Both the position numbers and the translations under genes were made by a program. This document shows, in pieces, positions 19,666 to 52,536 of a stretch of DNA of 64,000 nucleotides (positions are counted from its first letter, which is position 1; every line of letters begins with the position of its first letter). The stretch comes from Convolutriloba macropyga (Eukaryota), in the NCBI RefSeq assembly GCF_964194025.1, contig NC_134474.1:21576001-21640000 (forward strand), read 5' to 3'. Under the pieces are notes generated by a model. That model did no database searches, was not told the origin of the DNA, and saw only the letters and a program-made list of their open reading frames with translations.

Positions 19666-21312
19666 ATGTTGAACTGGATGAAGCGCCAACCGACTCAAGA
19701 CGACTCTGTTTACAGTATCCCCCACAATTTGGCCCGTCTTTACAAGACTAAATTGTTCCCTCTTGAAGAGTACACAAGGTTCCAGGAATTCCACTCCCCG
19801 CTTCTTGACGATGCTCACTTCACTTCCAGACCTATGGTACTTCTTATTGGCCAGTACTCGACTGGTAAAACGACGTTCCTCCGGTACCTGGTAGAAAGAG
19901 ATTTCCCAGGAATGAGAATTGGACCGGAACCGACAACTGATGGCTTTATGGTTTTGGAACATAACGAAATTGATGCTCTTATACCAGGAAATGCCCTGGT
20001 TGTGGATCCTTCAAAACCTTACGGAGGCCTGTCCAAATTTGGAGTAAATTTCTTGAATAGATTCCAAGGAGCAAGTGTTAATTCCGAAGTGCTGAAGCAT
20101 GTGACATTGGTTGATACACCTGGAATTTTGTCCGGATCCAAGCAACTGACGAGAGGATATGACTTCATTGGGGTCTTGGAGTGGTTTGCCGAACGTGTTG
20201 ACAGAATCATAATCCTATTTGATGCTCACAAACTTGACATATCAGACGAACTAAGAATGTCGATTCAAGCGCTGCGGGGCAATCATGAAAAAATTAGAAT
20301 TGTGCTAAACAAAGCTGATCAAGTTAATACCCAGCAGTTGATGCGTGTATACGGTGCGTTGCTGTGGTCACTTGCAAAAGTATTTGATACTCCCGAGGTT
20401 GTCAGGGTCTACACTGGCTCGTTTTGGAGCAACAGTTTGAAAAATGAAGAAAACAGGAAACTTTTTGAGCTTGAAAAAGCTGATCTCTTTTCCGATTTGC
20501 AGACGCTGCCCAGATCTTATGCAGTGAGATTACTGAACGATTTGGTCAAACGAGCACGTTTGGCTCTCGTTCATGCGTATATTTTACAAGCAGTTCGTGG
20601 CGAAACAGGAATGTTTACTGGTTCGAGTACTAAAAAGAAAATTGTTGACAGGCTAGCAGAAATCTACAATCAAATCCATAAACAGCATAATATCTCTCTA
20701 GGAGACTTTCCAGATTTGGAACAAATGAAACACGCCTTGGCTACCCGTGACATTGGTAAGTTGCCAAAGTTCAAAAAAGACCTGGTTGAAACCGTAATGT
20801 ATTTGCTAACTAGAGATATTCCTCCGTTAATGGCAAGGATTAATCAAGAGGAACTCAAATCTGACGATAATGTGCTACGAGGAGGAGTGTTTGATGCTGG
20901 TGCGTCCCCATTCAATGAAGGTTTCGATGAAGGTGTCGACAAAGGTCAAGGTGAAGAAAAATGGATCGTTGACGAGGAACGAGAACGTTGGGAAAAGGAA
21001 TTCGAGGCTTTGATTCCAAATGAAAACGGGAAAATTGAGGGTCGAAAAGCAAAACCACACTTTGTACGCACAAAGTTACCGAACTCAACTTTGGGTAAAA
21101 TCTGGCAGCTTTCGGACATTGACAGAGACGGATGTCTGGATTACGAGGAATTTGCATTGATGATGCACCTAATATACAATGTAGCTCTGGAAGATTATCC
21201 GTTGCCTGATAAACTTCCAGATCACTTAATTCCGCCAACAAAAAGAAAGCCAGTCTTGTCTAAAGCATCCAGTGTTGATGAAGATGGAGAACTGTATCCT
21301 AAGCTAAATTAA
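19666..21312 (+). CDS. EHD1: EH domain-containing protein (EHD1/RME-1/Past1 family), 548 aa, intronless CDS
   Basis: P-loop GQYSTGKT, IGPEPTTD, DTPG, NKAD, LMRVYGALLWSL, and a C-terminal EH domain (IWQLSDIDRDGCLDYEEFAL...HLIPP). AATAAA occurs near 21470. The symbol denotes the family; the paralogue is not resolved. Confidence 0.97.
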   Translation: MLNWMKRQPTQDDSVYSIPHNLARLYKTKLFPLEEYTRFQEFHSPLLDDAHFTSRPMVLLIGQYSTGKTTFLRYLVERDFPGMRIGPEPTTDGFMVLEHNEIDALIPGNALVVDPSKPYGGLSKFGVNFLNRFQGASVNSEVLKHVTLVDTPGILSGSKQLTRGYDFIGVLEWFAERVDRIIILFDAHKLDISDELRMSIQALRGNHEKIRIVLNKADQVNTQQLMRVYGALLWSLAKVFDTPEVVRVYTGSFWSNSLKNEENRKLFELEKADLFSDLQTLPRSYAVRLLNDLVKRARLALVHAYILQAVRGETGMFTGSSTKKKIVDRLAEIYNQIHKQHNISLGDFPDLEQMKHALATRDIGKLPKFKKDLVETVMYLLTRDIPPLMARINQEELKSDDNVLRGGVFDAGASPFNEGFDEGVDKGQGEEKWIVDEERERWEKEFEALIPNENGKIEGRKAKPHFVRTKLPNSTLGKIWQLSDIDRDGCLDYEEFALMMHLIYNVALEDYPLPDKLPDHLIPPTKRKPVLSKASSVDEDGELYPKLN

Positions 21313-21999
21313 CTAATCAATTGCATACCCTGAAGCAAATATAATAAATTTTACTGTAAGAATCAACACAAAATTCGTGCTTTAAGTAGTTTTTAGTACT
21401 CTATGCCCGTAAGCAACGTTCAGATAAAATATGCATCCATTTTTCACTATGTGAAAACAGCTTTGATGAAATAAATTATTGGTAAGCAGTGCCTAATGCT
21501 TAAGAATATCTTAAAATAATTTCTTTTCACGTCATCAAAAGGTTGAATTCAGATTTTGTTCATCCTATTTATGTTGTTTTTGCGCCTAGATATCTGTAAG
21601 CTTTACTCCAAGACTAAATTAGCTTTACTCCAAGACTAACTGTCAACTTTTTTAGTAACCATGTAATCGATTACTCCCTTTTCATCAGTTGCTGATGACT
21701 AAAATAGTGCTCACACGTAACTCGGCGTTGAAAATCTCCCACATTATATGAAAATCCCTTTGCCGTTATGTTGATAGCAATTTTTTGAACTCTTTTTTTT
21801 ATAGTAAAGGGTTTATTAATTGCTCTGAAATCAAGTTTGAGGCAATTATTGCAATCGTCTGTTTTTTGTTAAAACTTTTTTTTTATTTGACCGTTTCTGT
21901 TCTGGGATGTTCTTTCGCTTTCTTGAGTGATTTAAGTTTTCGCTAAACGAAACGGGATAAACTCTTAAAGCCCGAGGCTGTTGAGCAGCTCTCTTGGAG

Positions 22000-22950
22000 T
22001 TTTACTAAGCTCTAATTTTACCCTTCAGCAAAGCTGCTGATTTAAGCTTGAGGATGCAGAAAAATGGGGGTGTAAAGGGTGATTTTGGAATGTTTGGATG
22101 AACCCCTTTGCCTCACCGCTTTTACCATTGCCCATTTCCGCTAGCCTCAAAAGTTTAAGCACACTAAAGCTAATGTCAACCCCTTGCTTGTCGCTCGAGA
22201 AAAAGTCGTCAGACGATAGTTTCTTAGTTAGTGCAGGCGAAATATCAAAAATTCTCACCAATGTTGGCTTCTTATAGGCTGGCTCATGCTTGCGCTAGTC
22301 TCGGAATCGGATCATTTGTTTCGTGCTTGCAGGAGATTTATTGTCAAATGGGTTTTCAGTTATTTTGTATTGTACTTCATTTTCCTGCGATGTTATGGAT
22401 TAGCTGCCGTACATAGCTGTGCATCATGAGTAAAGGCAGTGGGTCTTCGATTCTTCAAATACCATTTTCAGCTTAACCCTAATTGCAGTTTCAATATTAA
22501 TTAGGATAGGTTTAGTTAACGTGACTGCCTGTCCAGAAGCTGCATGTGCTGTAACGACCTTTCTGCGTCTAAGCTGGGGTAGGTTACAAACCGGCATGGG
22601 GATTTCTCAATAGTCTTTCTCAAAGTAGAGGTGGGCATTGGGGTGCTGGTTGACCGATGGAAAAAAGTTCTGTTTTCAAGCATAGCTCTGCTGGTCGCTC
22701 CGATTGGTCTTTCTTTTTAATGATTTGCCGAGGCCGTTTCATCAATTTTCCATACGATGAAAACGATTTTGGCGATTCTTCTGACACCAAACATTGTTTT
22801 AATTCGACATCATTACAGGGTCATTCTGATTGATCTACCCTGGCTTGTAGCCTCTCAACAAAATTGACTTTTTGTAGCTACATTTTATTACTTATAATAG
22901 ACGGAGTTTGAGGATTGACTAGTGTACACAGAGTGTTTTTAATAGGAAAG
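22000..22950 (-). pseudogene. Possible heavily decayed LTR-retroelement gag-protease relic
   Basis: Manual minus-strand translation gives a degenerate zinc knuckle (VWCQKNRQNRFHRMEN*) followed by a retropepsin-flap-like VVTAHAASGQAVTLTKPILINI, with many stops. Confidence 0.3.
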
Positions 22951-24098
22951 TCAAGTACTCAATTAGAAAAAGTTTGAATTTATACAGGAAATGGGAGCAC
23001 GAGAAAAATCCGAGCCAATTGTTTGGTTCAGTTTTATGGGAAAATATGACACTTGGCGACTACAGCAATAGCTCAGAATTGATGAGTCCCTAAAAATTTA
23101 TGCCTTTTTCAAAAATTATAAAGAATTTTAAAATTTTAGAGAAATGCCAGTTCCTTTTTCTCAGTCAGATCTTTTTAACCAAACTGCAGGGTTGCGGAAT
23201 TGTGACTGTAAACGTATACCTGAAGTGTGGCAATTTCTATCCAAATAGCTCACAGTCCATATTAGCTCAATTATCTGAAAGCGATAATTTTTTTGTTTCT
23301 AGAGGGAAATTTTGGTGTTTGTAGGGTAAAAGATAAAGGGATTCTGTGTCTCTAGGTTAAGAATACTCAAGCGAAAACTTGGGTTCATTGTATTGGTATG
23401 AGATAAACAGAAAATTGTTTTTTTTTAGTGTCGGCTGATACTTTCCTCAATTATTATACCAAATCGCTGCTCAATGCTATCACAGCGTGCCAGTGTAGTT
23501 CATTAGTAGTTCATTTTAAATTTTATTCAGTCTTTTAGAAACATAAATTTCTCAAAAGTAATTCTCTAAACAAGTAATTTTCTAAATAGAAAAAAGCATT
23601 GTTTTTAGTGTGGCTACGCATTAAGGCGCAAAGCGTACATTTTACTCGGCTAAATTTACCGGTGTTTTTTTTACTGTTTTGCTAGTTATGAAGAAATTAC
23701 TAAATAGATGGAGATGAAAGGAAGATTAGTTGATTAATAATTGTATAAAATACCTGTATTTCAAATTGCGGATTGGGAAAGAAGTTAAGCATTTCGGGAA
23801 ATCATTTTTTAGGCTAATTGAAGCAATTTCGTGGAGAAGGGTTGGTTCTATTAGTCGAAATTTGTACTATTTGCAGTGTAACCATAGAAACGGTTATGCC
23901 CGCAGTTGAAAAAGGTTTTATCATTTCCGAGGAAAATGCAAAATCTACTATTTGAAATTTAGCTAAAAAGATCTCATAAACGTCTCATTGTTTTTATACC
24001 AACACAATTTTAGTAGCTCGTGTCGGACTCCTTCAGTTATGTTAACAATGAATAGCAGGAGTGTTACTATTGAGTTGCTTCAGGTTTATGTTACCAAG

Positions 24099-26373
24099 AT
24101 GAGCCGCGTTCTAACTTTATCACCCACAAAGCGCAGTACAGTCAAATTGGAGTACCATTTTCCAGGCTATGCCGGAGCCAAGCTCGCCAGCGCACACTTA
24201 TCATTGCCCGCAAATTCTTCACTAGCATCATGTGCCCAAGTCGAATACGGGTTGTATTTTGTTCTGGACAACGGCGACCAGTGTTTACTGGGGAAGTTCT
24301 CTCAGAACAACTGTACGACTAAGTTAGAATTTTCAAGCTATAGTGATTTTTCGTTGAAGTTGCTTCCTATCGATACTTCTAATGGGAATGAAGTGGAGCA
24401 TGATAGCGAGTTGAGCAAAGATCTATCTGATCTAAATGCTAAAAGTGTCTCAATGACTATTTTGTGCCATCCTATTGAAAAATTGTCTCATAATGTCCAA
24501 ATGTTTACGTATATGGAAACGTACAAGCTGTCATCGCATGCAAATGCGGTAACAGTTGATTCGCAATTACAAAACTATGAAGTTTATCTTGAAAAAATTT
24601 TTCTATCTCAAATTGGAAATTATTCTCAAAATTTGAGCGCTTTTTTGTACGTGTTGCTACCCGATATGCAGGAAAAATTTTGTGTCGGAGAAATTAAGAG
24701 CGGACTTTTGAGCTCTAATATTGGAGTTTTGGTTCCGAAAGGAGCTACAATTGAAGTCAAGGTTCAAAACCCAGAAAATTTACGACAGGAAATATCCGGA
24801 AATCATTATGATTCGGAGTCAAATATTAGCTCGAGTGGAGCCCTGTCGGATTCTGAAACTTCTTTTGCCGAAACAGAAATCAAGCTTTTGTTTATTGTTT
24901 CAAACAACTCTGGAAATGTTTCCTCTAATCGTTATTTGATTTTGAAGAATTACCAATCAAATGCAATCGATTTCTGCCCAGAAACTGAAGAATCCTTTCG
25001 AGTCACAAAGTTGGCTTTAGCTTTTCAAGAAAACGAGAGCTTGAATGCCAAATGCTACCTTAAAGCTACTTTGAATGCTAAATTTGGAACAATTTTAACG
25101 GAAGTCAGGAAAGCCAAGCCATTTGCATTCATAGACGAAGAATTTTGTTCTTCTATATCGTTGGGCTTATGTTGTCCTGAAGATTTTGAACTTTCGGATA
25201 TGCGCGAACCAATAAATGGTATAGTGTTTTACGAAGTGAAGCCTACTAAAACGACAGAAACTTTTGAGTCTTGTTTGACTTGTAAAGACGTTGACAAGCT
25301 GTTTTCGACTTTCCTAAAGATAAGAGACAAATTTTCTGCAGATGTTGCTTACATGAGAGAAAATTGTCTGTTTGGCTGTGATACTTTAATTATCGGTGAT
25401 TCCATACTGCGATACGTCGACCCTTCACTTCTTAATGGAAATGTCTACGTCCAATCGTTAGGAGGCTGTACAATTGAACAACTCGATTACATAATCACAG
25501 TTTTGTCTCTTGAGAACCTGAAAAGGTTGATTGTTCATATCGGTGTTAATAACACACACGGGTTCAACAACATATGCAATGTTAGCGAACAGGCTGAGAA
25601 ATACAGAGCGTTAGTTAAAAAGTGCAAGCTCAGGGCGCCAAATGCTAAATTGTACCTATCAGGAATTGTCGCTAGATTTGATAAAACGTACTGCAATCAA
25701 TGGGTTTCGAACCTCAACAATGAAATTGTAAGGCTGTGTAACGAGGATCCTTCTTTAACCTTCATAAATAACAGATCGGTGGCCTACGATTTTCAGGGTC
25801 AGAAAATCGGCCCAAATTATACTCACGACAATCTTCATATTTCGGAGAAGGGAACCAGAGTGCTGTTGTGTAGCATAAATTCAGTGACAAAGATATCAGA
25901 TTTCTTGCCTGACTTAGTCGAAACTGCATCGTCAAATGACTCGTATGTTACAGCTATTGATGATTCAATTTCGTCCACTACGTCACGGAACAATTCCTCT
26001 GCTGTTTTCCAGCAAACTTATTTCTACCAAATGGGTGATAATAAAAACAAAAATGCGTCAGCCAAAACTTTTGAATCCGGAAACAAAACTACTTCAACTC
26101 CTGGCAATCATAACCAGATGTCGAAGAAAAATAGGAAGAAAAACAAGCAGAAGCAAAGGTTGGGGTGGGGTGAATTGGACGTTCTTGGATCAGGTTGGTC
26201 TAATTCGACTTCAGCGATATCAAGTGCTGCAGAGGATGAGCCAAAACTAAGTTGCGAAGGAGTTGCTGCAAGCACAGGTGTTGTACATTCTGCAGGTGAT
26301 AGCGTGGTTGTTTCAACTGTTGCAGAGCCAGTAGTTAATGATATTGAAGAGACTGAAACTAAAAATATTCAAG
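24099..26373 (+). CDS. Exon 1 of uncharacterised ~955-aa protein: 3 putative nucleoplasmin-like repeats + SGNH/GDSL hydrolase
   Basis: 808-aa open frame with SGNH blocks IIGDS (GDS at 25395), SLGG, HIGVNN and DNLH (~25827). It ends at donor CAAG|GTGAGT, phase 1. The start could instead be ATG 24039 or 24048. Confidence 0.88.
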
Positions 26374-27402
26374 GTGAGTTTCAATTCAATTTGATGACCA
26401 GCGTAGAAGCTTAAAGTTTCGTAATTCTCGTTTTCTTGGTCTTTACCACGAGGCCGCATCAACCATGATTAATCTCGGAGAAAACATGGAACGTAGTAGT
26501 AAATTCTTTTAAATAGACTTACCTCTTCATCCTTCTAGTTGTAATCGGGTCAAGATTGATCCAAATTAAGTGTTTCTATTGCATATGGTTCGAAATATGA
26601 CAGTGCGGTTCGGAAAACACGGATACATAAACCTATTTGAAGATCGTTTTTTTTCAACGTTGCATCATGAGGGTTGAAAACATTGTGCTACGCGTCCTGA
26701 ATTTTTTGGTTAAGTCAATTTTAGCCGAACGATATCTTCTGCGGAGCGACCCAACAGTGATATTATTGAGAAGCATACGCAACCAGCATGGGCAACCCCA
26801 TCGAGCCGACCCCCACATTCCGCGCCTCCCCCTCCAGTACACCCCATCCACCCACTGTTATAAGTTAAGTTGTAATTTGAAATTACAACAAATGGCAGCA
26901 AGTGCTTGCTAGAAGAAACTATCAGAACTAGGAACATCAAGGCTGTTTGGCTCCTTTTGGGGCCCCCGCTCATCTACATTTTTCACTTAATTGTCTACCA
27001 AATGAGGAAATGATAAAAAAAATTAACATATCAACATATCGTTCAACAAACTACTAAAAGAATAAAACAATCTACCCTAGAGGGCTCATGAGACCTGTGG
27101 CTACAATAATATGACTACCAGAAAAGACGGCAATAAAAATCAAATAGCTACAAATATTAATTACGACCAAAACTCCATGTCCATTTTTTGAAAACAACTA
27201 ATAACCAAATCAAAATGGCATCAGATAAAATTTATACTAAGAGGATTAACCGGTACTTTTTTGGAACAATATATGGGACTTTTCCTCAATGCGACTTGGC
27301 AACAAGTCGACTAGAACTGTGAAAAAGGGGCAAAGTTTATTAAAACATTGCTTTTTTTCTAAAAAAGAATTAAATTCGAACTGATCAGAAACATTACGCA
27401 TC

Positions 27403-30400
27403 AAATGAAATCATTGAGAGAGTCTTTTAAACCTCAATAGAGAGCGACTGAGGCCTTTCATCATCCAGGATATGTCATACGACTACAAAAAGAACGACAA
27501 ATACAGGCAAAAACGAAAAATTTGCACGAAAAATTATGCACGAAAACGATGTCCCCCCAATCAATTAAATATTAAGCTGATCACTGAAAACAATAAAAAT
27601 CTTCTTTTGCATTTTTTGCAGGTGACAACAATTGTAAATCAAATGACGCCCATTATTGTGATACTGTGAAAATAAAACAAAAACCTACAAAAATGGGGCA
27701 AATATACGCAAAAATCACGAAAATTGGTTTTATGAAAACTGGTTGTTCCAAGAAGAAAGATCTTTTGAGGAAAATAAAACCTTTTTGAAAAGCACACTGT
27801 ATTTCAATAGTTAAATGATGTGAATTGTATATAGAGATGCGTAGCTACTATTTAACAGAAATAAAATTGGCAGATCTCAAAAATCTATCACTTTTTAATT
27901 TCAAAACAAATATTTTCAAAATTCATAGCCAACAAAAGTTTTCAACTAAAAGAGTAGACAGTTTGTCTTGCAACTACTTGGAAAACTAACGCGACTGTTT
28001 TTAATGAGACTATATAATAAGACTATAAAATAACATTAAATACAAGCTCAACTGATAAGTTTCACAAACAACTTTATCAAACCACAGTTTTGAAGCCATT
28101 AAATTTATAAGATATTAACCGCGAGAATATAACATCTTCATTTGCGTCTTCTTTGATCATCATAACGTCTTTTTGTTAAACGACTATCACAAAATGACAA
28201 CAAAAAGAACCACAAAAACTGAAAAGTGACTAAACTTCACAATAGTCTGCTGAAACAAATTGTGTAAGCCCTGAAGACATCATTTAAACGTTTAAACAAC
28301 AGAAAATTTATTGTTTGATTCAACAAAACATTAAAAACTAAACAATGAGGCTAATTTACGAAAATGATACAGTATAGTAAAATACGAAGAAAAAAACGCA
28401 AACCAGAACAAAAAGTGATCTATTATTCTTTTTTTAGAAATTTTATTCGAAAGTCAAAATAATCATTAGCTATCTACCGATATCAAATATTAAGTTCATT
28501 TGTTTATCTTTAGTTGGCCACTGAGACCTTTAATTACACAATATTTGGCATATGACAACAAAAATTAACAAATAAAGGGCAAAAATAAAAATTTCTAACC
28601 AATTTCTGCAAGAGAACGGTGTCGCAGCCCTTTGAACCGTATGTTATGAAAACAAAAAATATGTTCAGTTTCAAATCATGTAAAGTTTTTTTCAGTTAGA
28701 TTGTTAAATAATGTGACAATTTACAAAAGAAACAAAAACAACAGCAAAAATGGGCAATTATGCACAAAAATCAGAAAATTTTGAATGAAAACTCGTAGTA
28801 CCAAAGGCAAGAAAATCTTCTGCTAAAACAATCGGCCACAAAATTAGTTTTTATTCAATAAGGAGGAAAGGGTGACCTTTACTTCCTGAAAATAAGCAAA
28901 ATCTTGACTAAAATAATACAAAAAATTGACAAGTTCAAAAAATCACAGAAATTTCCTTAAAACAAATACTTTCAATAACATAAGAGACATTAGGTAACAA
29001 CCGAATGAATAGAAATGGTTCACCTGCAAATGTTGAGGAAGAAATGTAGATCATTGAGTGGTTAAACTTAAAAATCACACTGCCAAAAAAATAACAATTG
29101 AAGGCAAATATAAGAATTCAGTTAAATTTTACTAAAACTCTTCCTCAAAGCCTTAAAAACCCTTTGGTTCTCTGAAAACAAACTGTATCTACATTTAGCC
29201 TCAAATTTACGTAAATTGTAGCTATCATTAACGGAGCCGTGAATAAAAAGTATTGTCGGTAATTAACATTAAAAAAACAAAAGCAAAATATTTTGAAAAA
29301 AGGCAGCATCAAAATAAAAACCAAAAAGTCTCTGATTCTAAGAATCCATGATATTATCGAACCTCTTCCTGGTTTTGTCGCGCGCCCAGAAAACCGACCA
29401 AGTTTTCCAAGTTTTTGCGAATTAGACCAATTGTTGAGTGGTGTTCTTCAAATATTAAAAAAAACAAATGAAATCATTGAGTCTTTTAAACCTCAATAGA
29501 GAGCGATTGAGGCCTTTCATCATCCAGGATATGTCATACGACTACAAAAAGAACGACAAATACAGGCAAAAACGAAAAATTTGCACGAAAAATTATGCAC
29601 GAAAACGATGTCCCCCCAATCAATTAAATATTAAGCTGATCACTGAAAACAATAAAAATCTTCTTTTGCATTTTTTGCAGGTGACAACAATTGTAAATCA
29701 AATGACGCCCATTATTGTGATACTGTGAAAATAAAACAAAAACCTACAAAAATGGGGCAAATATACGCAAAAATCACGAAAATTGGTTTGATGAAAACTG
29801 GTTGTTCCAAGAAGAAAGATCTTTTGAGGAAAATAAAACCTTTATCAAAAGCACACTGTATTTCACTAGTTAAATGATGTGAATTGTATATAGAGATGCG
29901 TAGCTACTATTTAACAGAAATAAAAATGGCAGATCTCAAAAATCTATCACTTTTTTTTCAAAACAAATATTTTCAAAATTCATAGCCAACAAAAGCTTTC
30001 AACTAAAAGAGTAGACAGTTTGTCTTGCAACTACTTGGAAAACTAACGCGACTGTTTTTAATGAGACTATATAATAAGACTATAAAATAACATTAAATAC
30101 AAGCTGAACTAATAAGTTTCACAAACAACTTTATCAAACCACAGTTTTGAAGCCATTAAATTTATAAGATATTAACCGCGAGAATATAACATCTTCATTT
30201 GCGTCTTCTTTGATCATCATAACGTCTTTTTGTTAAACGACTATCACAAAATGACAACAAAAAGAACCACAAAAACTGAAAAGTGACTAAACTTCACAAT
30301 AGTCTGCTGAAACAAATTGTCTAAGCCCTGAAGACATCATTTAAACGTTTAAACAACAGAAAATTTATTGTTTGATTCAACAAAACATTAAAAAGAGCTC

Positions 30401-33400
30401 TAAACAATGAGGCTAATTTACGAAAATGATACAGTATAGTAAAATACGAAGGAAAAAACGCAAACCAGAACTAAAAGTGATCGATTACTCTTTTTTAGAA
30501 ATTTTATTCGAAAGTCAAAATAACCATTAGCTATCTACCGATATCAGATATTAAGTTTATTTGTTTATCTTTAGTTGGCCACTGAGACCTTTAATTACAC
30601 AATATTTGGCATATGACAACAAAAATTAACAACAAATAAAGGGCAAAAATAAAAAACTCTAACCAATTTCTGCAAAAGAACGGTGTCGCAGCCCTTCGAA
30701 CCGTATGTTATGAAAACAAAAAATATGTTCAGTTTCAAATGATGTAAAGTTTTTTTCAGTTAGATTGTTAAATAATGTGACAATTTACAAAAGAAACAAA
30801 AACAACAGCAAAAATGGGCAATTATGCACAAAAATCAGAACTTTGAATGAAAACTCGTAGTACCAAAGGCAAGAAAATCTGCTAAGACAATCGGCCACAA
30901 AATTAGTTTTTTTTTCAATAAGGAGGAACGGGTGACCTTTACTTCCTGAAAATAAGCAAAATGTTGACTAAAATAATACAAAAAATTGACAATTTCAAAA
31001 AATCACAAGAAATTTCCTTAAAACAAATACTTTCAATAACATAGACATTAGGTTACAACCGAATGAATAGAAAAGGTTCACCTGCAACTGTTGAGGAAGA
31101 AATGTAGATCATTGAGTGGTTAAACTTAAAAATCACACTGCCAAAAAAATAACAATTGAAAGCAAAGATAAGAATTCAGTTAAATTTCACTAAAACTCTT
31201 CCTCAAAGCCATAAAAACCCTTTGGTTCTCTGAAAACAAACTGTATCTACATTCAGCCTCAAATTTACGTAAATTATAGCTGTCATTAACGGAGCCGTGA
31301 ATAAAAAGTATTGTCGGTAATTAACATTAAAAAAACAAAAGCAAAATATTTTGAAAAAAGGCAGCATCAAAATAAAAACCAAAAAATCTCTGATTCTAAG
31401 AATCCATGATATTATCGAACCTCTTCCTGGTTTTGTCGCGCGCCCAGCAAACCGACCAAGTGTTCCAAGTGTTTGCAAATTAGACCAATTGGTGAGTGGA
31501 GTTCTTCAAATAAAAAAAATGACATCATTGAGTCTTTTAAACCTCAATAGAGAGCGATTGAGGCCTTTCATCATCCAGGATATGTCATACGATTACAAAA
31601 AGAACGACAAATACAGGCAAAAACGAAAAATTTGCACGAAAAATTATGCACGAAAACGATGTCCCCCAATCAATTAAATATTAAGCTGATCACTGAAAAC
31701 AATAAAAATCTTCTTTTGCATTTTTTGCTGGTGACAACAATTGTAAATCAAATGACGCCCATTATTGTGATACTGTGAAAATAAAACAAAAACCTACAAA
31801 AATGGGGCAAATATACGCAAAAATCACGAAAATTGGTTTTATGAAAACTGGTTGTTCCAAGAAGAAAGATCTTTTGAGGAAAATAAAACCTTTTTGAAAA
31901 GCACACTGTATTTCAATAGTTAAATGATGTGAATTGTATATAGAGATGCGTAGCTACTATTTAACAGAAATAAAATTGGCAGATCTCAAAAATCTATCAC
32001 TTTTTTTTCAAAACAAATATTTTCAAAATTCATAGCCAACAAAAGCTTTCAACTAAAAGAGTAGACAGTTTGTCTTGCATTTACTTGGCAAACTAACGCG
32101 ACTATTTTTAATGAGACTATATAATAAGACTATAAAATAACATTAAATACAAGCTGAACTAATAAGTTTCACAAACAACTTTATCAAACCACAGTTTTGA
32201 AGCCATTAAATTTATAAGATTTTAACCGCAAGAATATAACGTCTTCATTTGCGTCTTCTTTGATCATCATAACGTCTTTTTGTTAAACGACTATCACAAA
32301 ATGACAACAAAAAGAACCACAAAAACTGAAAATTGACTAAACTTCACAATAGTCTGCTGAAACAAATTGTCTAAGCCCTGAAGACATCATTTAAGCGTTT
32401 AAACAACAGAAAATTTTTTGTTTGATTCAACAAAACATTAAAAACAGCTCTAAACAATGAGGCTAATTTACGAAAATGATACAATATAGTAAAATACGAA
32501 GAAAAAAACGCAAACCAGAACTAAAAGTGATCGATTACTCTTTTTTAGAAATTTTATTCGAAAGTCAAAATAACCATTAGCTATCTACCGATATCAGATA
32601 TTAAGTTTATTTGTTTATCTTTAGTTGGCCACTGAGACCTTTAATTACACAATATTTGGCATATGACAACAAAAATTAACAACAAATAAAGGGCAAAAAT
32701 AAAAATTTCTAACCAATTTCTGCAAGAGAACGGTGTCGCAGCCCTTCGAACCGTACGTTATGAAAACAAAAAATATGTTCAGTTTCAAATGATGTAAAGT
32801 TTTTTTCAGTTAGATTGTTAAATAATGTGACAATTTACAAAAGAAACAAAAACAACAGCAAAAAATTGGGCAATTATGCACAAAAATCAGAACTTTGAAT
32901 GAAAACTCGTAGTACCAAAGGCAAGAAAATCTTCTGCTAAAACAATCGGCCACAAAATTAGTTTTTATTCAATAAGGACGAAAGGGTGACCTTTACTTCC
33001 TGAAAATAAGCAAAATGTTGACTAAAATAATTCAAAAAATTGTTAAGTTCAAAAAATCAAAAGAAATTTCCTTAAAACAAATACTTCCAATAACATAAGA
33101 GACATTAGGTAACAACCGAATGAATAGAAAAGGTTCACCTGCAACTGTTGAGGAAGAAATGTAGATCATTGAGTGGTTAAACTTAAAAATCACACTGCCA
33201 AAAAAGTAACAATTGAAAGCAAAGATAAGAATTCAGTTAAATTTCACTAAAACTCTTCCTCAAAGCCATAAAAACCCTTTGGTTCTCTGAAAACAAACTG
33301 TATCTACATTCAGCCTCAAATTTACGTAAATTATAGCTGTCATTAACGGAGCCGTGAATAAAAAGTATTGTCGGTAATTAACATTAAAAGAACAAAAGCA

Positions 33401-33581
33401 AAATATTTTGAAAAAAGGCAGCATCAAAATAAAAACCAAAAAATCTCTGATTCTAAGAATCCATGATATTATCGAACCTCTTCCTGGTTTTGTCGCGCGC
33501 CCAGCAAACCGACCAAGTGTTCCAAGTGTTTGCGAATTAGACCAATTGTTGAGTGGAATTCTTCAAATATTAAAAAAAAAC
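27403..33581. repeat. Tandem array of three ~2.06-kb A-rich units within intron 1 of the SGNH gene
   Basis: ATGTCATACGA recurs at 27472, 29531 and 31582. The same short ORFs recur at 29293, 31351 and 33408. Confidence 0.96.
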
Positions 33582-34837
33582 AACGATGCATTTTGTATAA
33601 TTGTCAAGTTAAATCTGCAAAAAATGGCCATGTTTTAGTTCCAGAAGATTGTCATACGGCCCTAATTGCAACCAGCGCCGCTCTTTTGCAGAATAGGGGG
33701 TTTGTTTTGAATTTTCTAGGTCACTAAGTCTGGCAAACTTTAACAAAGTGGACCAAAAAAAGCAAATTTTGTTCCATTTTTGATGAAAAAAAGTTTGAAT
33801 TTTGAAAATTTATCAAAAATTTTAGCCAAAAAAATTCAATCAAACAATTCAGCAACGCTCTTCTATCTCTAACGGTAACAAAAACAATCGGTGTTAAAAA
33901 TTTTAACTTATTTTGAATTATATTAGCGAAATCGTGCCAAATTTTAGCAAAAATTACTGAAAATGTGAACAAAAACAGTCGAATGTTCACAAAACTTTAA
34001 ACCTCGATAACTCCCTGTTAAAAACGAAATCGAAAAAATCTTTTTAATTCCGTATTCTACGCTGGACGGGCTTTTTAATGATACCACTCACAATTCTCTA
34101 CGATGAATATATCGATCGGCCAAAATTGACTGAACAAAAAAAACCCAGTTGAGTATATAGTTCCTCCCTCCCCACTAAAGTGGGGGTCGGAACAATAAAA
34201 ATGGCGCTGGAAAATCGTTCAAATATCCGTGGTTTTTGGCAGAAAAGTTTGATGTAACTATCCGAACTTTAAAAGCCCATTTAACTTTCTACACAGTTTT
34301 GGATATTTCTTGGCTGTTAAATTTTAAAGAAGACGGCTCCAAACGTTGTGAATCAGGAAATACGCAAAATTTTTGTTCTTCCCTTCCTTAAAAATTCGCA
34401 GTCGAGATCTTACGTCTCTATATAGAGAATTGGAATTAAAAGTTATTGTTTTGAATACAAAATCATCTTGTGGTTGTAAAATGCTGACTGATTGCTTGAA
34501 TCATACTAGAGAAATTAAGTTTGAAAGAATGAAATTTTTGTAAAACAAAATCAAAAATGCAAAAGCTTTATTAGCTGGAATGTGATTTATCTAACAGTCC
34601 CGGTAGCTCGAGTATGGAGGCAATTATCTGTTTTTTAAAGAAAAGTTACAAGTAGAACAATTTTGTTTGATTGCACTGGACAGAAAATGCATTTCATAAA
34701 CTATAAGTTTGGAAACTTTAAGAGCTACAGAGTGTGTTTTTGAACTAGGAAGCCGCAAAACCATGAATTGAAGAAACAGTTGTAACAATTCTATTTTGTG
34801 GCTCGCCCACATTCCTGATTCTCCTTGTTATGCTTAG

Positions 34838-35092
34838 AACCCATAGCTGACTTGCTGAGCTTTGAAGAGGCCACTACACCCGTGCAACCTATGACGGAGT
34901 CAGTAGAAAATCTGAGTCTGTCTCAAGAAGATTTGTTGGACTCGGAGGACAAATCGGAAGTTTCCTCTGTGGCTAACGACACCGAGACTGGTAGTGAAAT
35001 CATGCCAACTGGTGGATCTGAGAAAGGTGCGAAAAAGAAAGGAGGCAAGAGAAGTGCTACTAAAAGGAGCAACAGTGATCTGGGGCAAAATG
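34838..35092 (+). CDS. Exon 2 of the SGNH gene (acidic then Lys-rich, disordered)
   Basis: Acceptor GCTTAG| (alternative in-frame CATAG| at 34846) and donor AATG|GTAAGT are both phase 1, matching the flanking exons. Confidence 0.82.
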
Positions 35093-35715
35093 GTAAGTGC
35101 TGCATTGATTCATTGTTCAGACGAAGGTAAGTTAGATAACCTCTTTAGAAAAGGGTAAAATTAAAAGGAAAGAAATTTGGCTAAAATGTGTTCCATAAAT
35201 CTGTTTCAAATCATCTTAAAATGACCACTGTTTAATGTCGAACAATATCATCTTAAGAACATCATTGAGCACTTAGCACCGAAAAATGATTATCGAAAAT
35301 TATAGCAAATAGTGAATTCAACATGTTTTTTTATGGAACATTTTAATGGACTTTTTAAAGTGAGTGCCTAGAAATGTACTCTTGACACTGTTACCACAGG
35401 AGTAGTTGTAATGATTTGTTTGATTATGGTGAGAGGTTGATGATTGCTTTTAGGCATGCGAATCGCGGGGACTTTTTTGGACTGGTATTGGTTGAATAAT
35501 TCGGGTGGCGCCTCCTCCAACACCACTATCTAAATTTACACTTAGGTAAGCATAAAAAGTATATCTTTAAAATGACTTGTCTCTTTAGAAGCTCTCAGGA
35601 TTCGTAGCTTTAATCTATTAAAAGAGATGCCTTTGAGCTAATTTTTTTATCAAGTGCAAACAACTGATTGAGTTGCGCAATTGGTATAAAAAAGAAAATG
35701 TATGGCTAATTTTCA

Positions 35716-38700
35716 TTAATAGCGGAACCATTTGTAGTTTGAACTCGATTATCAGTGACCATTTGTCGTTCTGACCAGAAACAACTTCAAAAAACAAATT
35801 ATAGGTTAATATTCTCGAGGTAGCCGTTTTTAGGTTAGAATGCTTCGGTTTTTAATAGCTGCGTTAGCAATTCAGGCGGCTATTATTGCGTTTTTTCATG
35901 TTTTTTTTTATAGCTGCGAAGCTGTAAGCTGAGCGAAGTTATATTGCGGTGCTCTTGGTTTTTTACAATTCAAAGAATTTGAATTGTATTGGGGCGCTGT
36001 CTTTTTACGACTCGAAGAGGAGTATTGGAGAAGTCCTTTTTCTATTTAATCAATTTTTGGAGTGAATTTTGAAGCGGGAAATGAAACGCCTGAAAAAATT
36101 TGGAGTGATTTTGTTGCTGACTAAAAGTGAAGAGCGGAGCGAAAAGAGAGCGGTTTTTGTTCATACCGCTGTTTTTGAGAGAGCGAGAAATTGATGTGTG
36201 AAAAAATTTTTTCTAAGCGAGTGAAATTTTTTGTTCACGTGCGGCTTTTAAACTCAGTTTTTTGCAACTTTTGATAGTTATGAGGTTTGATTATGATATT
36301 GTATTAGTTTTAGTTTGTTTTGATAGGAATTGAAGGTTTCAAGTAGTTAATTTGATTTTTAATGCTAATTTGGAGGTTTTTGATCAGTTTTGCTGATTTT
36401 TAGACGAAATTTAACGGTTTTTTACCTGTTTTTTGTTTTACTGCTTTAGGTGGGATTTGAATAGAAGCTTGTTACTCAAGGAATTGTCAGACACCAATTG
36501 ACTAAGGTTTTGTGTGTATAAATCATTTTTTTCTACGGAAAAATGACAAAAAAAATTGAGAAATTTTAAACCATTTTTCTCAATTTTAGCAGTTTTTCTT
36601 TTTTGTCTTACCCACCCTTTTATAACTTGCCCATTGTTTTGCGAGTTTTTCTTTGCTCTAATTGCAAAGGAACCTTATTCGGCTTTATGTTTCCTTGTGC
36701 TATTAAAAAACTCATTTAGTTTTTATAGTTTTTTTTTGTTGAATTTGTTTTTGAATGCCGTTTCTCTTCCTTAATTTTTTATGGCATTTGTGGAGGTTTA
36801 GGGTTCATAATAGTTGTTATAGTTATTTAGTAATAAGTATGGGCAATTTTAGATATAAATCATTTTTTGTTGAGAAATAGGACAAAAAATGGCGAAAATT
36901 GGAACTAGTTTTCTTAATTTTTTTTGCAGTTTTTCGGGTTTTTTGTTTTTTTAAACAATTATCTTCAACTATTATGACTTGTCTATTGTTTTTGCGAGCA
37001 TCTGGATGCCCTATTGTCTGAAAAGAATTTTCTTTGGATTTATATGCTTTTGTAATATTAAGAAATTTACTAACTTTTTCCAGTTTTTTAGTGCAAGTTG
37101 TTTTTAAGAGCTTTTTTCATAATTTGGCCTCAAGTATTTTAGAACATTCACTTGAGTGGTTTTAGTAAGTACTAGTAGTTTTGATGAAATAATTTTGGCA
37201 GAGATAGTTATTTCATGATCTCAAGTTATGACAAAATTTGATCAGATTTTTTATCATATTTTAACAGATTTGATTTTTTTGTTTTTAGTTTTTTGTTTCG
37301 TGGTTTGCTTTCGAGAAAATCATAAATTAGTGGAGGCAAGTTTTTTGCAATCTCATAAGTGGTTTTATTAGTTACTATTTGTATTGATGAAGTAATTGTG
37401 GCAGACATAATTTTTTGGGGTATCAATTTATGACAGAATTTGATCAGATTTTTAATCATATTTTAATAGATATGATTTTTTTTTACTTTTTCTTTTTTGT
37501 ATTTCAAGATAAGCGAAAATTAGTGGAGGCACGTTTTGTCTGATGAGTAGTTGGATGGCGGTTAAATAGATTTTCACTTTGAGTCGTTTCCAGAATTCTT
37601 CCGGCTATGTTTTTTTTAAGATCTGTTCACACATTTTCATGATTTTTGAAGTCAAATTGATTTATATGCTTTTGTAATATTAAGAAATTTACTAACTTTT
37701 TCCAGTTTTTTAGTGCAAGTTGTTTTTAAGAGCTTTTTTCATAATTTGGCCTCAAGTATTTTAGAACATTCACTTGAGTGGTTTTAGTAAGTACTAGTAG
37801 TTTTGATGAAATAATTTTGGCAGAGATAGTTATTTCATGATCTCAAGTTATGACAAAATTTGATCAGATTTTTTATCATATTTTAACAGATTTGATTTTT
37901 TTGTTTTTAGTTTTTTGTTTCGTGGTTTGCTTTCGAGAAAATCATAAATTAGTGGAGGCAAGTTTTTTGTAATCTCATAAGTGGTTTTATTAGTTACTAT
38001 TTGTATTGATGAATTAATTGTGGCAGACATAATTTTTTGGGGTATCAATTTATGACAGAATTTGATCAGATTTTTAATCATATTTTAATAGATATGATTT
38101 TTTTTACTTTTTCTTTTTTGTATTTCATGATAAGCGAAAATTAGTGGAGGCACGTTTTGTCTGATGAGTAGTTGGATGGCGGTTAAATAGATTTTCACTT
38201 TGAGTCGTTTCCAGAGTTCTTCCGGCTATGTTTTTTTTAAGATCTGTTCACACATTTTCATGATTTTTGAAGTCAGTAGTGATTTTGGTCACGCCAAAAC
38301 AGGAAATGGAGTGAAAAAGCGAGTGGTTTTGCGGCGTGAATTTTTTTCACTCTAATTTTAAAGTAGAGTGAGAAAACGGTGTTTGAACAAAAATTCGGTT
38401 TCTCGGTAGGGGTTTTTTGTTCACGTGCGGCAGTTTCACTTTGATTTTTACTGTTTTTTTTTTATTTTTTGGATCGGATTCTTTTTCTAAATGGTTTTCC
38501 CAATCCATTCACAGCTGATTCTGGGCCTAGTTTTTTGTTTGAATTAATTTTTCGTTTCGCGCTAGTGGTTTTTTTGTTCACATGCGGCATTTAGACATTG
38601 ATTGTCTGTTTTTTTATTTTTTCATCTGATTTATTTAAAAATAATTTTCTCAATTCACTCATAGTCCATTTTAGGTCTAGTTTTTCTGTTTAGTCAATGA

Positions 38701-40875
38701 AAATTCTTTGAATTGTACTTCAGGGCTTGTCCTGCTATGTTTTTTGTTTCGTCGTCTGACGCTCTTTTTTCGTTTTACATTTGTTCACACAGCAAAGCTA
38801 AAAAAGTCAAATTTTCTGAATGACTTCTTCCTCTCACTAACGGCATTTGCGCGCGTGACGTCATTTTTCACTCGCTTTAGCAAAAGTTTTTAGGTTATTT
38901 GCGTGATTAGATTTTGATCATACGTGACTTACCTCACTCAATAAAATGACTTTTGCACTTTAAAACTTAAGTTTAAATTGAATTTGTTTAAGGTCAAAGG
39001 AACTCATTTGTGCAGTAAAGGTCTCTAATAAGAGGCTTTTGCGGAATGAATTTTAACAAGCTTTATTAATTTATTGTTGATTGTTTTCCACCTAGTGTTT
39101 TGAGCGGCGTCATTTTTTTCAATTTAGATATTTATCTGTTTCTATCTCTATTATATGGCACGCAGGTCTATTCTTTCGCAGCTATTCCGGCAATCTGCTG
39201 GCTATGTTTGTGATTTTTTGAGTTTTTTGTTTGATCCATCTTAGGTTGAAGTTTTTAAAAATTGATGAAGGCCTTTTGCGAGACAAAATTACTTGTTATG
39301 ACCTTTTTATGGGCTATATGTTTTGGTTCTACAAACACAAACACGCAAAATGATAATAATTTTTGCAATTTTTTTCAGTTTTTTGAAAATTTTTGTTATT
39401 TTTGAATTTTTACAGCTTCAGGGGCCAGAATCTTCTTTAAGGTTTGATAATAGGGCAGTGCATAGTTTCGAGTAACAATGGATCGGTTTTCAACATTTTA
39501 ATGTCTCGAATTTTAGCATTTTTTTGAGAAAATCTGCCATTTAAGGTTTTCTAAGTTTTTGTCAATTTTTGATATTTGTCCAATCTCAAGTGCCGGAAAA
39601 TCTATTCCACGGCCTCATGAAAAGTAACTGCTTGGTTGTTACTTTCAATGGATTTAATTTCAACAATTGAACCTTTCGAATTTTATTAAAAAAATTTTGA
39701 TAAGTTTTGCAATTTTTTTCAAGTTTTTTCAAAACATTTGTCTTTTTCTTGGTTCCTCTTGACTCAGTAGCCAGGTAACCTCATCCAGGATTTGATAGTA
39801 TTTTATTAAATAGTTGCTAGAGGCAGTTGACTGGTCTTGAACTTTTTAATCGAACAAAATTTTAATTTTTTGAAATCTGAAATTTCTATCTGAAAATTAT
39901 TTCCTATCGACCTTTGAGCCAATGAATTTTTTAAGGCTTGGAATTGGGTTGCTGCTAGAGACACAGAAATGATTTTGAAGATATTTAAATTACGATTTTC
40001 AGGAACTTCTCATTAAAATTTACAATTGATTTCAAAAATTTTTTGGTCATTTTCGAGTTAGTCGATCTTCAAGGGCCAATGAATTATTTTCAGGTTTTGC
40101 AGAAATAATACTGGACCGATTTCAGAAAGAAAAATTGGTTATGAACATTTTTTTTGAAATAGGTTTATTTAAAGGGATCAAATTTTGCCTTCGGGTAAAA
40201 GTTTCAAGAGTTTTAGCAATGAGTGTTTTTGTTTATTTTGTTTGATTGTTTGTTTCTCAAATTTGAGAGGATTTTGTTTACGTTTTGGCTCGCATTGCTC
40301 AATTGATCTGCTGGTCAGGTAGATTACTTCCAAGTTTTTCATTCAATTCTTTCAATTGTATTTCAGGACTTGTCCTTCTATGTTTTTGTTTACTTCGTCT
40401 AACAGATTTTCGTTTCTTACCCTGACTTCTTGGAATTGACTTTTTCAATGACTTCAGTAACTTCTACTGCTTTGCAGTTAAGATTTGTGTTCGTGACGTC
40501 ATTTCTGGTTTTAGGTCAATTGCGTGACTTACCTCATTCAAAAAATGACTTCTGAACTTTAAATTTTATGAACATTTAGTAAATAAAGGTCAATAGTGTG
40601 CATCTAAGTAGTGCCAAACTTATATGCCCTAATTCCCGAGTATTAGTCTTGAGTTTTAATATCGAATATTAATTTTGAAAAAGCTCCATTAGAGCTTTCT
40701 CCTTGTAGAGCAAATGTGTCTCATAAAATGACAGTCTGAATCTAACCCAAAAAGTCTAGTGGTCTTTTAAAAAGCTGGTGGTCGATCTGTCAATCTTATT
40801 TCTTTAGTTGTTTCAATTCATGGTAGGCCACAAGCGTCTATCGCGGCTATTTTCCGGCAATCTGTCGGCTACGTT
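35716..40875 (+). mobile_element. Nested stack of HINE/Helentron-like non-autonomous elements filling intron 2
   Basis: Stacked 5'-type ATAGC..GCTAT ends near 35718, 35854 and 35909. Hairpin+CTATGTTT-type 3' ends near 37605, 38227, 38735, 39203, 40378 and 40870. Confidence 0.55.
37037..38275. repeat. Near-perfect tandem duplication, 622-bp unit x2
   Basis: GATTTATATGC occurs at 37037 and 37659. Twin ORFs at 37226 and 37848 are offset by 622. Confidence 0.95.
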
Positions 40876-40916
40876 GCACCATTTTTGATCTCCGAATTTG
40901 TCCTTTTCCTTTTAAG

Positions 40917-41254
40917 ACTGTGTTGAGAGTGCTGAAGAGAAGTTATCCTCCGAAGAGAGCGGAGAGCAAAGTTTGAAAAGCAAAACTAAAACTGACAAAA
41001 AGCGGCGACGAGTGTCCATGAACGACGAAGTCACTGTTTATCCTATCCCAATTATTCCCAAGAAGATTCCGAACCAGTTGCCTCCGAGAGTGAGTAACAG
41101 ATGGAGGAACTTGCAGCCACAATTGACAGCCACAATTGACAATATCGAAGAGTTTGTTGAACTTGTAAATGGTAGTGCTCCGGCTTCAAAGAAGAAAAGA
41201 GTTGCGGCGAAGGGAGTTAATAAGAAGAAAAACGGAGGAAAGAAGGGGCGATAG
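40917..41254 (+). CDS. Exon 3 (terminal) of the SGNH gene, basic NLS-like tail
   Basis: The polypyrimidine acceptor TCCTTTTCCTTTTAAG| in phase 1 gives DCVESAEEKLSSEESGEQSLKSKTK..., in frame with ORF 40973-41254. Confidence 0.82.
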
Positions 41255-51236: not shown

Positions 51237-52536
51237 ATGGCCGATTCTGAGAGTTTGCCATATAAGGCGGACTACGCCAAAAGTGCTCGTGCCGCGTGTA
51301 AACAGTGTAACAATACTATTTCCAAAGAAGTGTTGCGGATTGCAGCTGTAACTCAAAGCACAACGTTTGATGGCAAAATGGTGCGATGGTTCCATTACAG
51401 CTGCTTTTTTGAACGGAATAGACCCAAAACCGTTCTTGACATCGAAGGGTTCAATGAACTACGCTGGGATGATCAGGAAAAAATCAAGAAAAAGCTGGGT
51501 GATAAAGGCGATGGTTCAACTGCTACGACGAAAATAAGTGATTTTCTGGTCGAGTATGCGGCCTCTGGACGTGCAAGCTGCAGAACTTGTGAGGAGAAAC
51601 TTCTAAGAGGCGAGATTCGGATTTCGGTTATGGGACACGACGAACGCTATGGAGCAGTGAAGCGATGGAGGCACCCGAATTGTTTCCAGGAAAGTATGGA
51701 AGAGGTTGGGTTTGCTCATGACGTAAAGAAAGTCCCAGGTTTCTCAAGTTTGAAAAGTGAAGATCAGAAAATGCTGGCTGAGTTATTGAAAATTGAGAAG
51801 TCAAGAAAAAAGCCGAGAGAGGAATCGACTGAAGATACAAAACAGGAAGCTAAGAAAGCAAAAGTGGAGAACGAAGAGCTTGCGAAGCAAAATAAAAAGA
51901 TTTGGAAACTTATTGACAAATTGAAATCTTTGGACAAGAAAGAAGTGAGGTCCTTTGTAGAAGAGAATGTATCGACAATGCCTAGAGGTGATTCTGATTT
52001 GTATCAATGCGCTGCAGATATTCTGCTTTTCGGCGCTTTACCCCCTTGTCCGGAATGTAAGGGTCAGATTTTTGCTAAATCGGATGCTTACCACTGCTCA
52101 GGCCAAGTGTCGGCTTATACTTCGTGTCTGTACACGACTAAAGAGTATAAAAGAAAAGCATTTAAAGTTCCCGGTGAACTTCTAAGTGACCCAGATTCTT
52201 TGTTTAAAGATGTAACCTACAAGCCTAGAACTCGCGTTTTCCCCGAAGTTGCAGCGGTTAAAGCACAAACTGTGTTCAATGCCGAGAGTTCAAAGTTGAG
52301 TGAGAAAGAGCAAAAGAAAAGAGATGATAAATGGAAGAGTGAATTGAAGTCTATGAAGGTGAAGGTCAAAGGAGGTGCGGCAGTTGACCCTCAATCGGGG
52401 TTGGATGATAACAACCATGTGCTCATGTGTACTGATTCGCAGCCGAGTCATCCTTATAGTTGTATTCTGAATTATGTGGATATTGCACGAGGATCGAATT
52501 CGTATTACAAGCTACAGGTCCTGGAGTCTGATGAGG
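51237..52536 (+). CDS. PARP1: Poly(ADP-ribose) polymerase 1, exon 1 (Zn1, Zn2, Zn3/PADR1, start of WGR)
   Basis: Motifs YAKSARAACKQC..WFHYSC, YAASGRASCRTC..WRHPNC, PCPECKG..YHCSG..TSC, KGGAAVDP and NSYYKLQVLE. Donor GAGG|GTAAAT, phase 1. Confidence 0.96.

Follow-up and report, generated by a model that had tools for sequence, protein, structure and literature searches.

Predicted nucleoplasmin-like repeats and an SGNH esterase domain combined in a spliced acoel gene

In a 64,000-nucleotide window of the Convolutriloba macropyga genome (contig NC_134474.1, positions 21,576,001 to 21,640,000; base composition ~36% GC), we found a spliced gene whose product joins three predicted nucleoplasmin-like (NPL) domains to an SGNH esterase domain. 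The full architecture consists of the three NPL domains, a linker with a CxxC motif and a helix-like stretch, an intact SGNH domain, and a charged disordered region that ends in either of two conserved alternative tails; it is real and is conserved in acoel-like assemblies. Both kinds of domain are known, but neither their combination nor the tandem arrangement has been described. The gene corresponds to LOC142342699 ("uncharacterized protein"), exon 1 of which is matched exactly by an 808-codon open reading frame (ORF) at 23988-26414. The spliced coding sequence (24039..26373 + 34838..35092 + 40917..41254) yields a protein identical, residue for residue, to RefSeq XP_075250313.1 (isoform X1, P0006, 975 aa), and residue numbering throughout follows P0006. 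The parts of the protein encoded by exon 1 are as follows.

24099..24494 (+): NPL-like repeat 1 (R1), residues 21-152; predicted 8-strand beta-sandwich with an acidic beta7-beta8 loop; AlphaFold2 (AF2) core at a predicted local distance difference test score (pLDDT) of ~87-92
24495..24914 (+): NPL-like repeat 2 (R2), residues 153-292; strand order of R1, with a long Ser/acid-rich disordered loop; AF2 core pLDDT ~80-88
24915..25271 (+): NPL-like repeat 3 (R3), residues 293-411; predicted 8-strand sandwich, the repeat kept in the single-repeat homolog P0005
25272..25373 (+): linker, residues 412-445; CxxC followed by a helix-like stretch (..VD....F.KIRDKF..), 91% identical to the Symsagittifera roscoffensis ortholog
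25374..25898 (+): SGNH esterase domain, residues 446-620, placed by Pfam PF13472, the match to PDB 4c1b, invariant columns, and residue mapping
25401-25403 (Ser455) and 25836-25838 (His600) (+): catalytic residues, together with Gly476, Asn504, and Asp597; all in invariant columns
25536-25538 (His500) and 25659-25661 (Ser541) (+): transposon-type residues, aligned to H191 and S228 of ZfL2-1
25899..26373 (+): disordered Ser/Thr-rich region with the motifs QQTYFYQ and RLGWGELD and a Lys-rich cluster (KKNRKKNKQKQR); kept in P0009

Predicted Fold of the N-terminal Repeats

A first-pass annotation made from the sequence alone had described the N-terminal region as three similar beta-rich blocks of NPL fold. 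The fold was borne out by AF2 models, in which each of the three repeats is predicted as an 8-strand sandwich. The R1+R2 model reached a pLDDT of 74 and a predicted template modeling score (pTM) of 0.74, with cores at 80-92; the three-repeat model was of modest confidence (pLDDT 61.6 overall), and R3 is well formed within it (~80).

Structural comparison with VIA-align placed R1 closest to Arabidopsis thaliana HDT1 (Z 13.7; 92/94 residues at 1.7 Å), followed by PfNPM (13.0), Drosophila NLP (12.6), and NPM1 (11.5), with NPM2, FKBP39, and AtFKBP53 also among the matches. The six best matches of R1 are NPL cores, and nine NPL entries all fall in the top 14 (Z 13.7-9.7), interleaved solely with two-domain and R2-region matches; no unrelated single-domain fold occurs among the best 50 rows. 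For R3, compared with 48,161 chains (wide VIA-align), the nine best matches are nine nucleoplasmin/NPL cores, including HDT1 (Z 13.0; 93/94 residues at 2.0 Å), PfNPM (12.1), Drosophila NLP (11.9), NPM1 (11.5), FKBP39-NPL (11.1), and AtFKBP53 (9.3). No unrelated single-domain fold exceeds 7.7, so that the NPL margin at the top is ~5 Z units. The NPL-core alignments of R1 and R3 span 92 to 100 residues.

The matches of R2 are weaker. Because VIA-align gives one alignment per PDB entry, the R1+R2 listing holds no scores of R2 against solved NPL cores, and the best listed single-domain PDB matches of R2 are generic jelly rolls (phage fibers, Ena pili, and CBM36; Z 8-9.7). In the fold search of the ESM Atlas, R2 (model residues 127/135-272) aligned to NPL-family models, namely, an HDT3-like model (99 residues at 2.6 Å) and the 'mitotic apparatus protein p62' family (110 residues, template modeling score (TM) 0.59 by target). 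The language-model features of R1 and R2 in the Atlas pointed to PF17800/PF03066 clusters only (0.89 and 0.88, 188-192 shared features); those of R3 gave no NPL pointer. On the evidence of these models, R1 and R3 have the NPL fold, and R2 very probably has it as well.

The jelly-roll matches of R2 also bear on a different reading, in which the beta-sandwiches are substrate-binding modules of carbohydrate-binding or jelly-roll type that belong to an ordinary cytoplasmic or secreted esterase. Some carbohydrate esterases have such domains N-terminal to SGNH, and R1 and R2 together can be superposed on the double jelly rolls found in PNGase F and PHM (VIA-align Z ~10-11, ~210 residues). Foldseek searches with the multi-domain models did not list NPL cores and were dominated by double or triple jelly rolls at low TM (PNGase F, PHM, viral capsids, and single-chain TNF/C1q trimers), and among AlphaFold database clusters only unnamed double jelly rolls were matched. 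Nevertheless, R1 and R3 match NPL cores specifically, no signal-peptide-like hydrophobic stretch was read in the sequence at the N-terminus, and long charged tails with Lys/Arg clusters are atypical of carbohydrate esterases. Because the NPL matches are so specific, we judge substrate-binding modules to be very unlikely.

The similarity of the three blocks to one another was harder to see in sequence. With hhalign, the R1-R2 pair scored 22.5 compared with 12.0 +/- 2.4 for column shuffles. Since this is the only pair above shuffles, the description of three similar blocks is upheld for the predicted fold and cannot be argued from sequence. A combined repeat profile found Arabidopsis HDT4 as its first PDB sequence match, in register, with an E-value of 0.063 that is not significant alone. 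Identity between C. macropyga and S. roscoffensis is 37-46% in the repeats. In the FKBP39/HD2 subgroup, the pore residues are a His on beta3 and an Asp on beta6 (PMC4414354); on the strand equivalent to beta3, no His is invariant across the orthologs, as read by eye from sequence alignments and not from a residue-level structural alignment.

All three repeats are acidic (isoelectric points (pI) of 5.9 for R1, 4.6 for R2, and 4.8 for R3), and each has an acidic loop. Within the R1 beta7-beta8 loop (~24393-24425), the motif EVEHxxExxKD is invariant in five orthologs yet disordered in the AF2 model (pLDDT <50); such conservation points to a binding or metal site and not to a mere acidic spacer. 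The pTM of the R1+R2 model suggests a fixed side-by-side packing within the chain, and such packing, as modeled, hints at an intrachain pseudo-oligomer, although here we infer from the model only.

Esterase Domain and Its Transposon Relatives

The esterase was described by the first-pass annotation as of the active type, and we found this to be the case at the level of catalytic residues: SGNH blocks I (GDS), II (G), III (GxN), and V (DxxH) are intact and invariant in five family members, and the domain is thus predicted to be active. PF13472 scored 31.2 bits against a gathering cut-off of 32.9 (E 3.9e-7), and precomputed annotations assign PF13472 to all homologs. Between C. macropyga and S. 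roscoffensis, 84% of the residues in this domain are identical.

The best PDB relative of the domain is the esterase of the zebrafish ZfL2-1 ORF1 protein (ORF1p), which is encoded by a long interspersed nuclear element (LINE; 4c1b; E 8e-5 for the sequence alone and 1.6e-6 for the family profile, next match 6e-4). Residues H191 and S228 of this protein are reported to be conserved only in transposon-encoded esterases (Schneider et al. 2013, PMC3905857). After the numbering of the 4c1b chain was mapped to the protein via the catalytic Ser143, these residues corresponded to His500 and Ser541, and in a 14-sequence alignment the Ser equivalent is invariant and the His equivalent nearly so. Outside the family, the best database matches are short proteins of crinoid and amphioxus origin (E 1e-17 to 1e-11). 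In the crinoid relative, a PHD finger and a coiled coil accompany the esterase, and an RVT_1/zf-RVT ORF lies 2.5 kb downstream; in the amphioxus relative, the esterase is followed by a CCHC knuckle. From these alignments, the acoel SGNH domain appears to belong to the clade carried by ORF1 proteins of LINEs (CR1/L2-type), and it was most likely recruited from a retrotransposon ORF1.

Two further observations concern such sequences. In Anneissia japonica (L003, 5992-11024), we observed a degraded CR1-like LINE, the ORF1 of which (PHD finger, coiled coil, and SGNH) is annotated as 'uncharacterized protein' and is followed by an RVT_1/zf-RVT fragment. A weak tblastn match to the SGNH blocks at 21743-22036 of the window has no ORF and was set aside as a chance match.

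Compared with esterase-type ORF1 proteins (CR1/L2, RTE-X, and Penelope; ZfL2-1 ORF1p, 4c1b), the acoel protein has the same SGNH subclade, the H191/S228 equivalents, and the catalytic residues, as well as a similar order of N-terminal self-association module (self-association is predicted in the acoel protein), linker, esterase, and basic peptides. It differs in having NPL repeats in place of the coiled coil and PHD finger and in adding a 350-residue disordered tail with alternative splicing, and its gene has introns, no ORF2, and host neighbors with conserved synteny.

This type of esterase, which is absent from the first-pass annotation, opens an alternative in which the NPL domains serve as a multimerization module. 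The product would then be a domesticated ORF1p, with the NPL repeats replacing the coiled coil, the basic tail binding RNA, and the esterase targeting membranes or lipids, and it would act in ribonucleoprotein assembly or in the control of the genome's own esterase-bearing LINEs and not in chromatin. Besides the ORF1p type of the esterase itself, this is favored by the layout of esterase ORF1 proteins (multimerization module, linker with a basic motif, and esterase), which bind acidic phospholipids and showed no histone-deacetylase activity (PMC3905857), and by the RNA binding of Arg-rich motifs in CR1-type ORF1 proteins. The CxxC of the linker also aligns (MAFFT) with the last Cys pair, at the end of the PHD finger, of CR1-like ORF1p, a weak hint that it may be a PHD-finger relic. 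However, an NPL domain has never been reported in an ORF1p, and acidic loops and acidic disorder are a hallmark of chaperones of histones and basic proteins and not of RNA binders. Moreover, the gene is syntenic and spliced in several species, and therefore any transposon function was lost long ago. We regard a domesticated ORF1p as a doubtful account of the protein, if a serious one.

Host-encoded relatives of such esterases have a precedent in Texim, a group of SGNH hydrolases, either host-encoded or captured by Helitrons, that occur in fish and other deuterostomes and are related to CR1 esterases (PMC4021074). Like the acoel gene, Texim genes are host-encoded, contain introns, encode SGNH proteins related to CR1 ORF1p esterases, have a patchy distribution, and lack an assigned function (PMC4021074). 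Unlike the acoel protein, Texim is by its description (PMC4021074) esterase-only, without an NPL or other N-terminal module or a charged tail.

Gene Structure, Family, and Selection

The exons of the gene, with the evidence for each, are as follows.

24099..26373 (+; RefSeq start 24039): exon 1, with the three NPL repeats, linker, SGNH domain, and first disordered stretch; ORF, donor GTGAGT, identity to P0006, and ortholog starts
34838..35092 (+): exon 2, an acidic disordered stretch (pI 4.4) with a basic cluster at its end; splice sites, P0006, and P0001
35454..35533 (+): alternative terminal exon of isoform X2, with a short aromatic tail (G)MRIAGTFLDWYWL... kept in three species (P0001, P0010, and P0004)
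40917..41254 (+): terminal exon of isoform X1, with a Lys/Arg-rich basic tail (pI 10.0) and the conserved motif KKRRRVSMNDEVTVYPIP; acceptor, P0006, P0009, and charge

The three exons and the junctions 26373^34838 and 35092^40917 had been proposed in the first-pass annotation and agree exactly with RefSeq X1. The splice signals are canonical, with donors GTGAGT after 26373 and GTAAGT after 35092 and AG acceptors before 34838 and 40917. Two details of that model changed. Its start at ATG 24099 is the common start of the orthologs, including that of S. roscoffensis, whereas RefSeq X1 begins 20 codons upstream at 24039; and its exon set, exact for the three exons, missed the alternative exon 35454..35533, in which the second RefSeq isoform, X2 (P0001, 889 aa), terminates. 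The S. roscoffensis ortholog likewise has X1 and X2 isoforms in RefSeq, and a homolog of the small X2 exon lies ~300 nt past the main exon at the P0003 locus (L001). Furthermore, P0004 (X2-type end) and P0015 (X1-type end; ORF uninterrupted) were found on contigs of 2.9 kb and 3.4 kb from one sequencing run, and these contigs are transcripts of both isoform types in a related species.

These data also bear on whether the gene model is an annotation artifact, in which a decayed transposon ORF has been joined to unrelated downstream ORFs. Intron 1 is 8.5 kb long and filled with repeats, and the prokaryote-style gene calls in ENA assemblies end at the exon 1 read-through, both as such an artifact would have it. 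On the other hand, there are two RefSeq isoforms with two counterparts in S. roscoffensis, the motifs of the exon 3 tail and the alternative exon are kept across species, a relative has both isoforms as contiguous transcript contigs, selection on the gene is purifying (see below), and no reverse transcriptase (RT) or endonuclease ORF lies nearby. An artifact is hardly credible.

The region after the esterase comprises ~350 low-complexity residues. The first-pass annotation had noted acidic loops together with an acidic/basic tail, and the pI values agree with this: 4.6-5.9 for the repeats, 4.4 for exon 2, and 10.0 for the exon 3 tail, which contains several KKKR/KKRRR clusters. In the X2 tail (35454-35533), the peptide (G)MRIAGTFLD and aromatic residues are kept in three species despite poorly conserved surroundings; judging from this conservation, the peptide may be a short linear or membrane-binding motif.

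Both introns contain repeats. In intron 1 (27554-33351), there is a tandem array with a period of ~2.06 kb and at least three copies that are 87-99% identical, with small ORFs starting MKKGSIKIKTKK...; the array may be a satellite or a non-autonomous element. In intron 2 (37037-37958), there is a 622-nt direct duplication, with 300 nt at 100% identity and a repeated 77-aa minus-strand ORF. Tandem Repeats Finder reported no repeats in the introns because the repeat periods exceed 500 nt, but a separate repeat search did detect them.

The family is small. Only a tiny family emerged when 5.8 billion proteins were searched by word index and when the N-terminal profile was run exhaustively, as a hidden Markov model (HMM), against 1.84 billion representatives; orthologs were found in acoel-like assemblies only. 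Its members are the S. roscoffensis ortholog; P0003, P0016, and P0004/P0015 (ENA, Logan assemblies); and P0005, a shorter protein with a single N-terminal repeat that aligns to R3 (ENA ERZ26695794). The ortholog search and estimate of dN/dS proposed with the first-pass annotation thus gave a small acoel-like family and, as detailed below, a dN/dS of 0.20 overall.

An intronless EHD gene (19666-21312, +) lies upstream of the NPL-SGNH gene, and a PARP1-like gene (51237-56862, +) lies downstream. EHD is a dynamin-like, EH-domain gene, and the PARP1-like gene has at least two long exons. EHD is also directly upstream at the P0003 locus and at both copies in the ENA assembly of C. macropyga, so that synteny extends to at least two species. 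In this assembly (ERZ25071359), the two EHD/NPL-SGNH copies are on separate contigs (L006 and L007); exon 1 of one copy matches the window exactly, and the other copy, with 95.5% protein identity and a dS of 0.065, could be a diverged haplotype or a segmental duplicate.

We computed dN/dS against this 95.5%-identical second copy and did not use S. roscoffensis because its 54% protein identity means saturated dS. Counts are followed by one-sided binomial P-values.

Overall: dN/dS 0.20 (23 non-synonymous and 31 synonymous; P 1e-8)
Linker and SGNH domain: dN/dS 0.02 (1 non-synonymous and 12 synonymous; P 9e-8)
NPL region: dN/dS 0.31 (15 non-synonymous and 13 synonymous; P 0.003)

The ORFs and a domain scan of the window revealed no RT or endonuclease ORF within or beside the gene. 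With two introns, no such ORF, and synteny with EHD, the esterase is therefore a transposon-type domain inside a host gene and not a transposon. The NPL-SGNH gene is a spliced, syntenic host gene under purifying selection, not a transposon copy.

Two other features of these loci were observed. On the 69-kb contig ctg76990 (ENA ERZ26859043; L001/L002), there are two copies of the P0003 gene with its flanking ORFs, in opposite orientation; they reflect an inverted duplication or else a palindromic artifact of assembly. At 7341-13610 (-) of the window, there is a Pao/BEL-type long terminal repeat retrotransposon that looks largely intact, with two long ORFs, one with DUF1759 (gag-like) and an aspartyl protease and the other with Peptidase_A17, integrase H2C2, and DUF5641.

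Proposed Function and Significance

A survey of NPL proteins distinguished three architectures (NPL-FKBP, HD-tuin, and plain nucleoplasmin), each with one N-terminal NPL domain (PMC4414354), and a full-text literature search for NPL with SGNH, or nucleoplasmin with an ORF1 esterase, found nothing. The statement in the first-pass annotation that tandem NPL plus SGNH matches no characterized family thus held against both sources. The acoel protein resembles nucleoplasmin/NPM and NPL proteins (Drosophila FKBP39, yeast Fpr4, and plant HD2/HDT) in its predicted 8-stranded N-terminal core, which superposes at 1.7-2.5 Å on HDT1, PfNPM, dNLP, NPM1, and FKBP39, and in its acidic tracts and long charged disordered tail with basic clusters at the end; as in the NPL-FKBPs, an enzyme domain follows the NPL core. 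It differs from them in having three tandem NPL domains per chain rather than one, acidic tracts inside the beta7-beta8 loops, no Pfam HMM match, and an SGNH esterase as the partner domain in place of a peptidyl-prolyl isomerase or a zinc finger. In addition, the enzyme domain of the acoel protein separates the NPL cores from the disordered tail. Another lineage-restricted chimera of an SGNH-fold domain with an unrelated N-terminal oligomerizing domain is insect Oskar (LOTUS and SGNH-like OSK). The OSK domain has lost hydrolytic activity (PMC3905857), whereas the catalytic residues of the acoel protein are all invariant, and a Pfam scan found no LOTUS domain in it.

By analogy with these proteins, we consider it somewhat probable that the host gene encodes an oligomeric binder of basic proteins or histones that enters the nucleus by its Lys/Arg clusters and carries a tethered esterase acting on a held client or lipid. 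The NPL module, together with the acidic loops and acidic disorder, would form an oligomerizing platform for basic proteins, histones among them, in the manner of NPL cores in other proteins; the Lys/Arg clusters of X1 would send the product to the nucleus; and the tethered esterase would strip an acyl ester from a client or lipid held on the platform. A chromatin or histone-chaperone function is what we infer from this comparison. Under the same proposal, the esterase domain would have been recruited out of a retrotransposon ORF1, and the single-NPL form (P0005) looks older, with the two N-terminal repeats of the longer proteins as probable later additions.

Several results weigh against this proposal. 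When 15 repeat sequences were run through Pfam with hmmscan (E up to 10), neither NPL nor Nucleoplasmin (PF17800 and PF03066) was matched, and a whole-protein Pfam scan found no NPL domain. The hhalign scores of R1-R3 and R2-R3 are at the shuffle background, so that inter-repeat sequence similarity is barely present. The exhaustive HMM search of the 1.84 billion representatives with the N-terminal profile, in which P0005 is partly misaligned, returned four representatives, all from the family itself, and no outside link. The AF2 models were built from input alignments of five sequences, and the confidence of the three-repeat model is modest, as given above. Three NPL domains per chain, as modeled, do not obviously fit the canonical homopentamer. 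The esterase domain may also have passed in the opposite direction, out of a host gene into the transposon. Lastly, the ZfL2-1 esterase showed no histone-deacetylase activity, and its authors favor a lipid or membrane role (PMC3905857).

A bolder 'Rosetta-stone' interpretation takes the fusion as a guide to the function of both parts: a pseudo-oligomer built from the tandem NPL domains would retain histones or further basic proteins of the nucleus, the SGNH domain would deacylate them or an associated lipid, and ORF1p esterases would act on chromatin clients. We consider it unlikely. If it were true, the plant HD2 'deacetylases' would have in this protein a counterpart with a genuine hydrolase. 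No ORF1p of the esterase type would have been domesticated before it, and no earlier NPL protein would have had several cores per chain.

Since 2003, it has been an open question what the esterase does in the ORF1 proteins of LINEs, and the solved domain of ZfL2-1 provided no more than a hint of lipid binding. A conserved host protein that pairs an esterase of ORF1p type with a predicted histone-chaperone fold would offer a concrete context in which this role can be tested. Three predicted NPL cores and a hydrolase in one chain also prompt one to ask how NPL rings are put together and whether an enzyme can be delivered by an NPL scaffold. An enzyme-bearing NPL protein would touch the old controversy over the HD2 'deacetylases' as well, given that the plant HD2 'deacetylases' themselves are without activity. 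For acoel biology, the gene is a lineage-restricted one that is under purifying selection and has two conserved isoforms.

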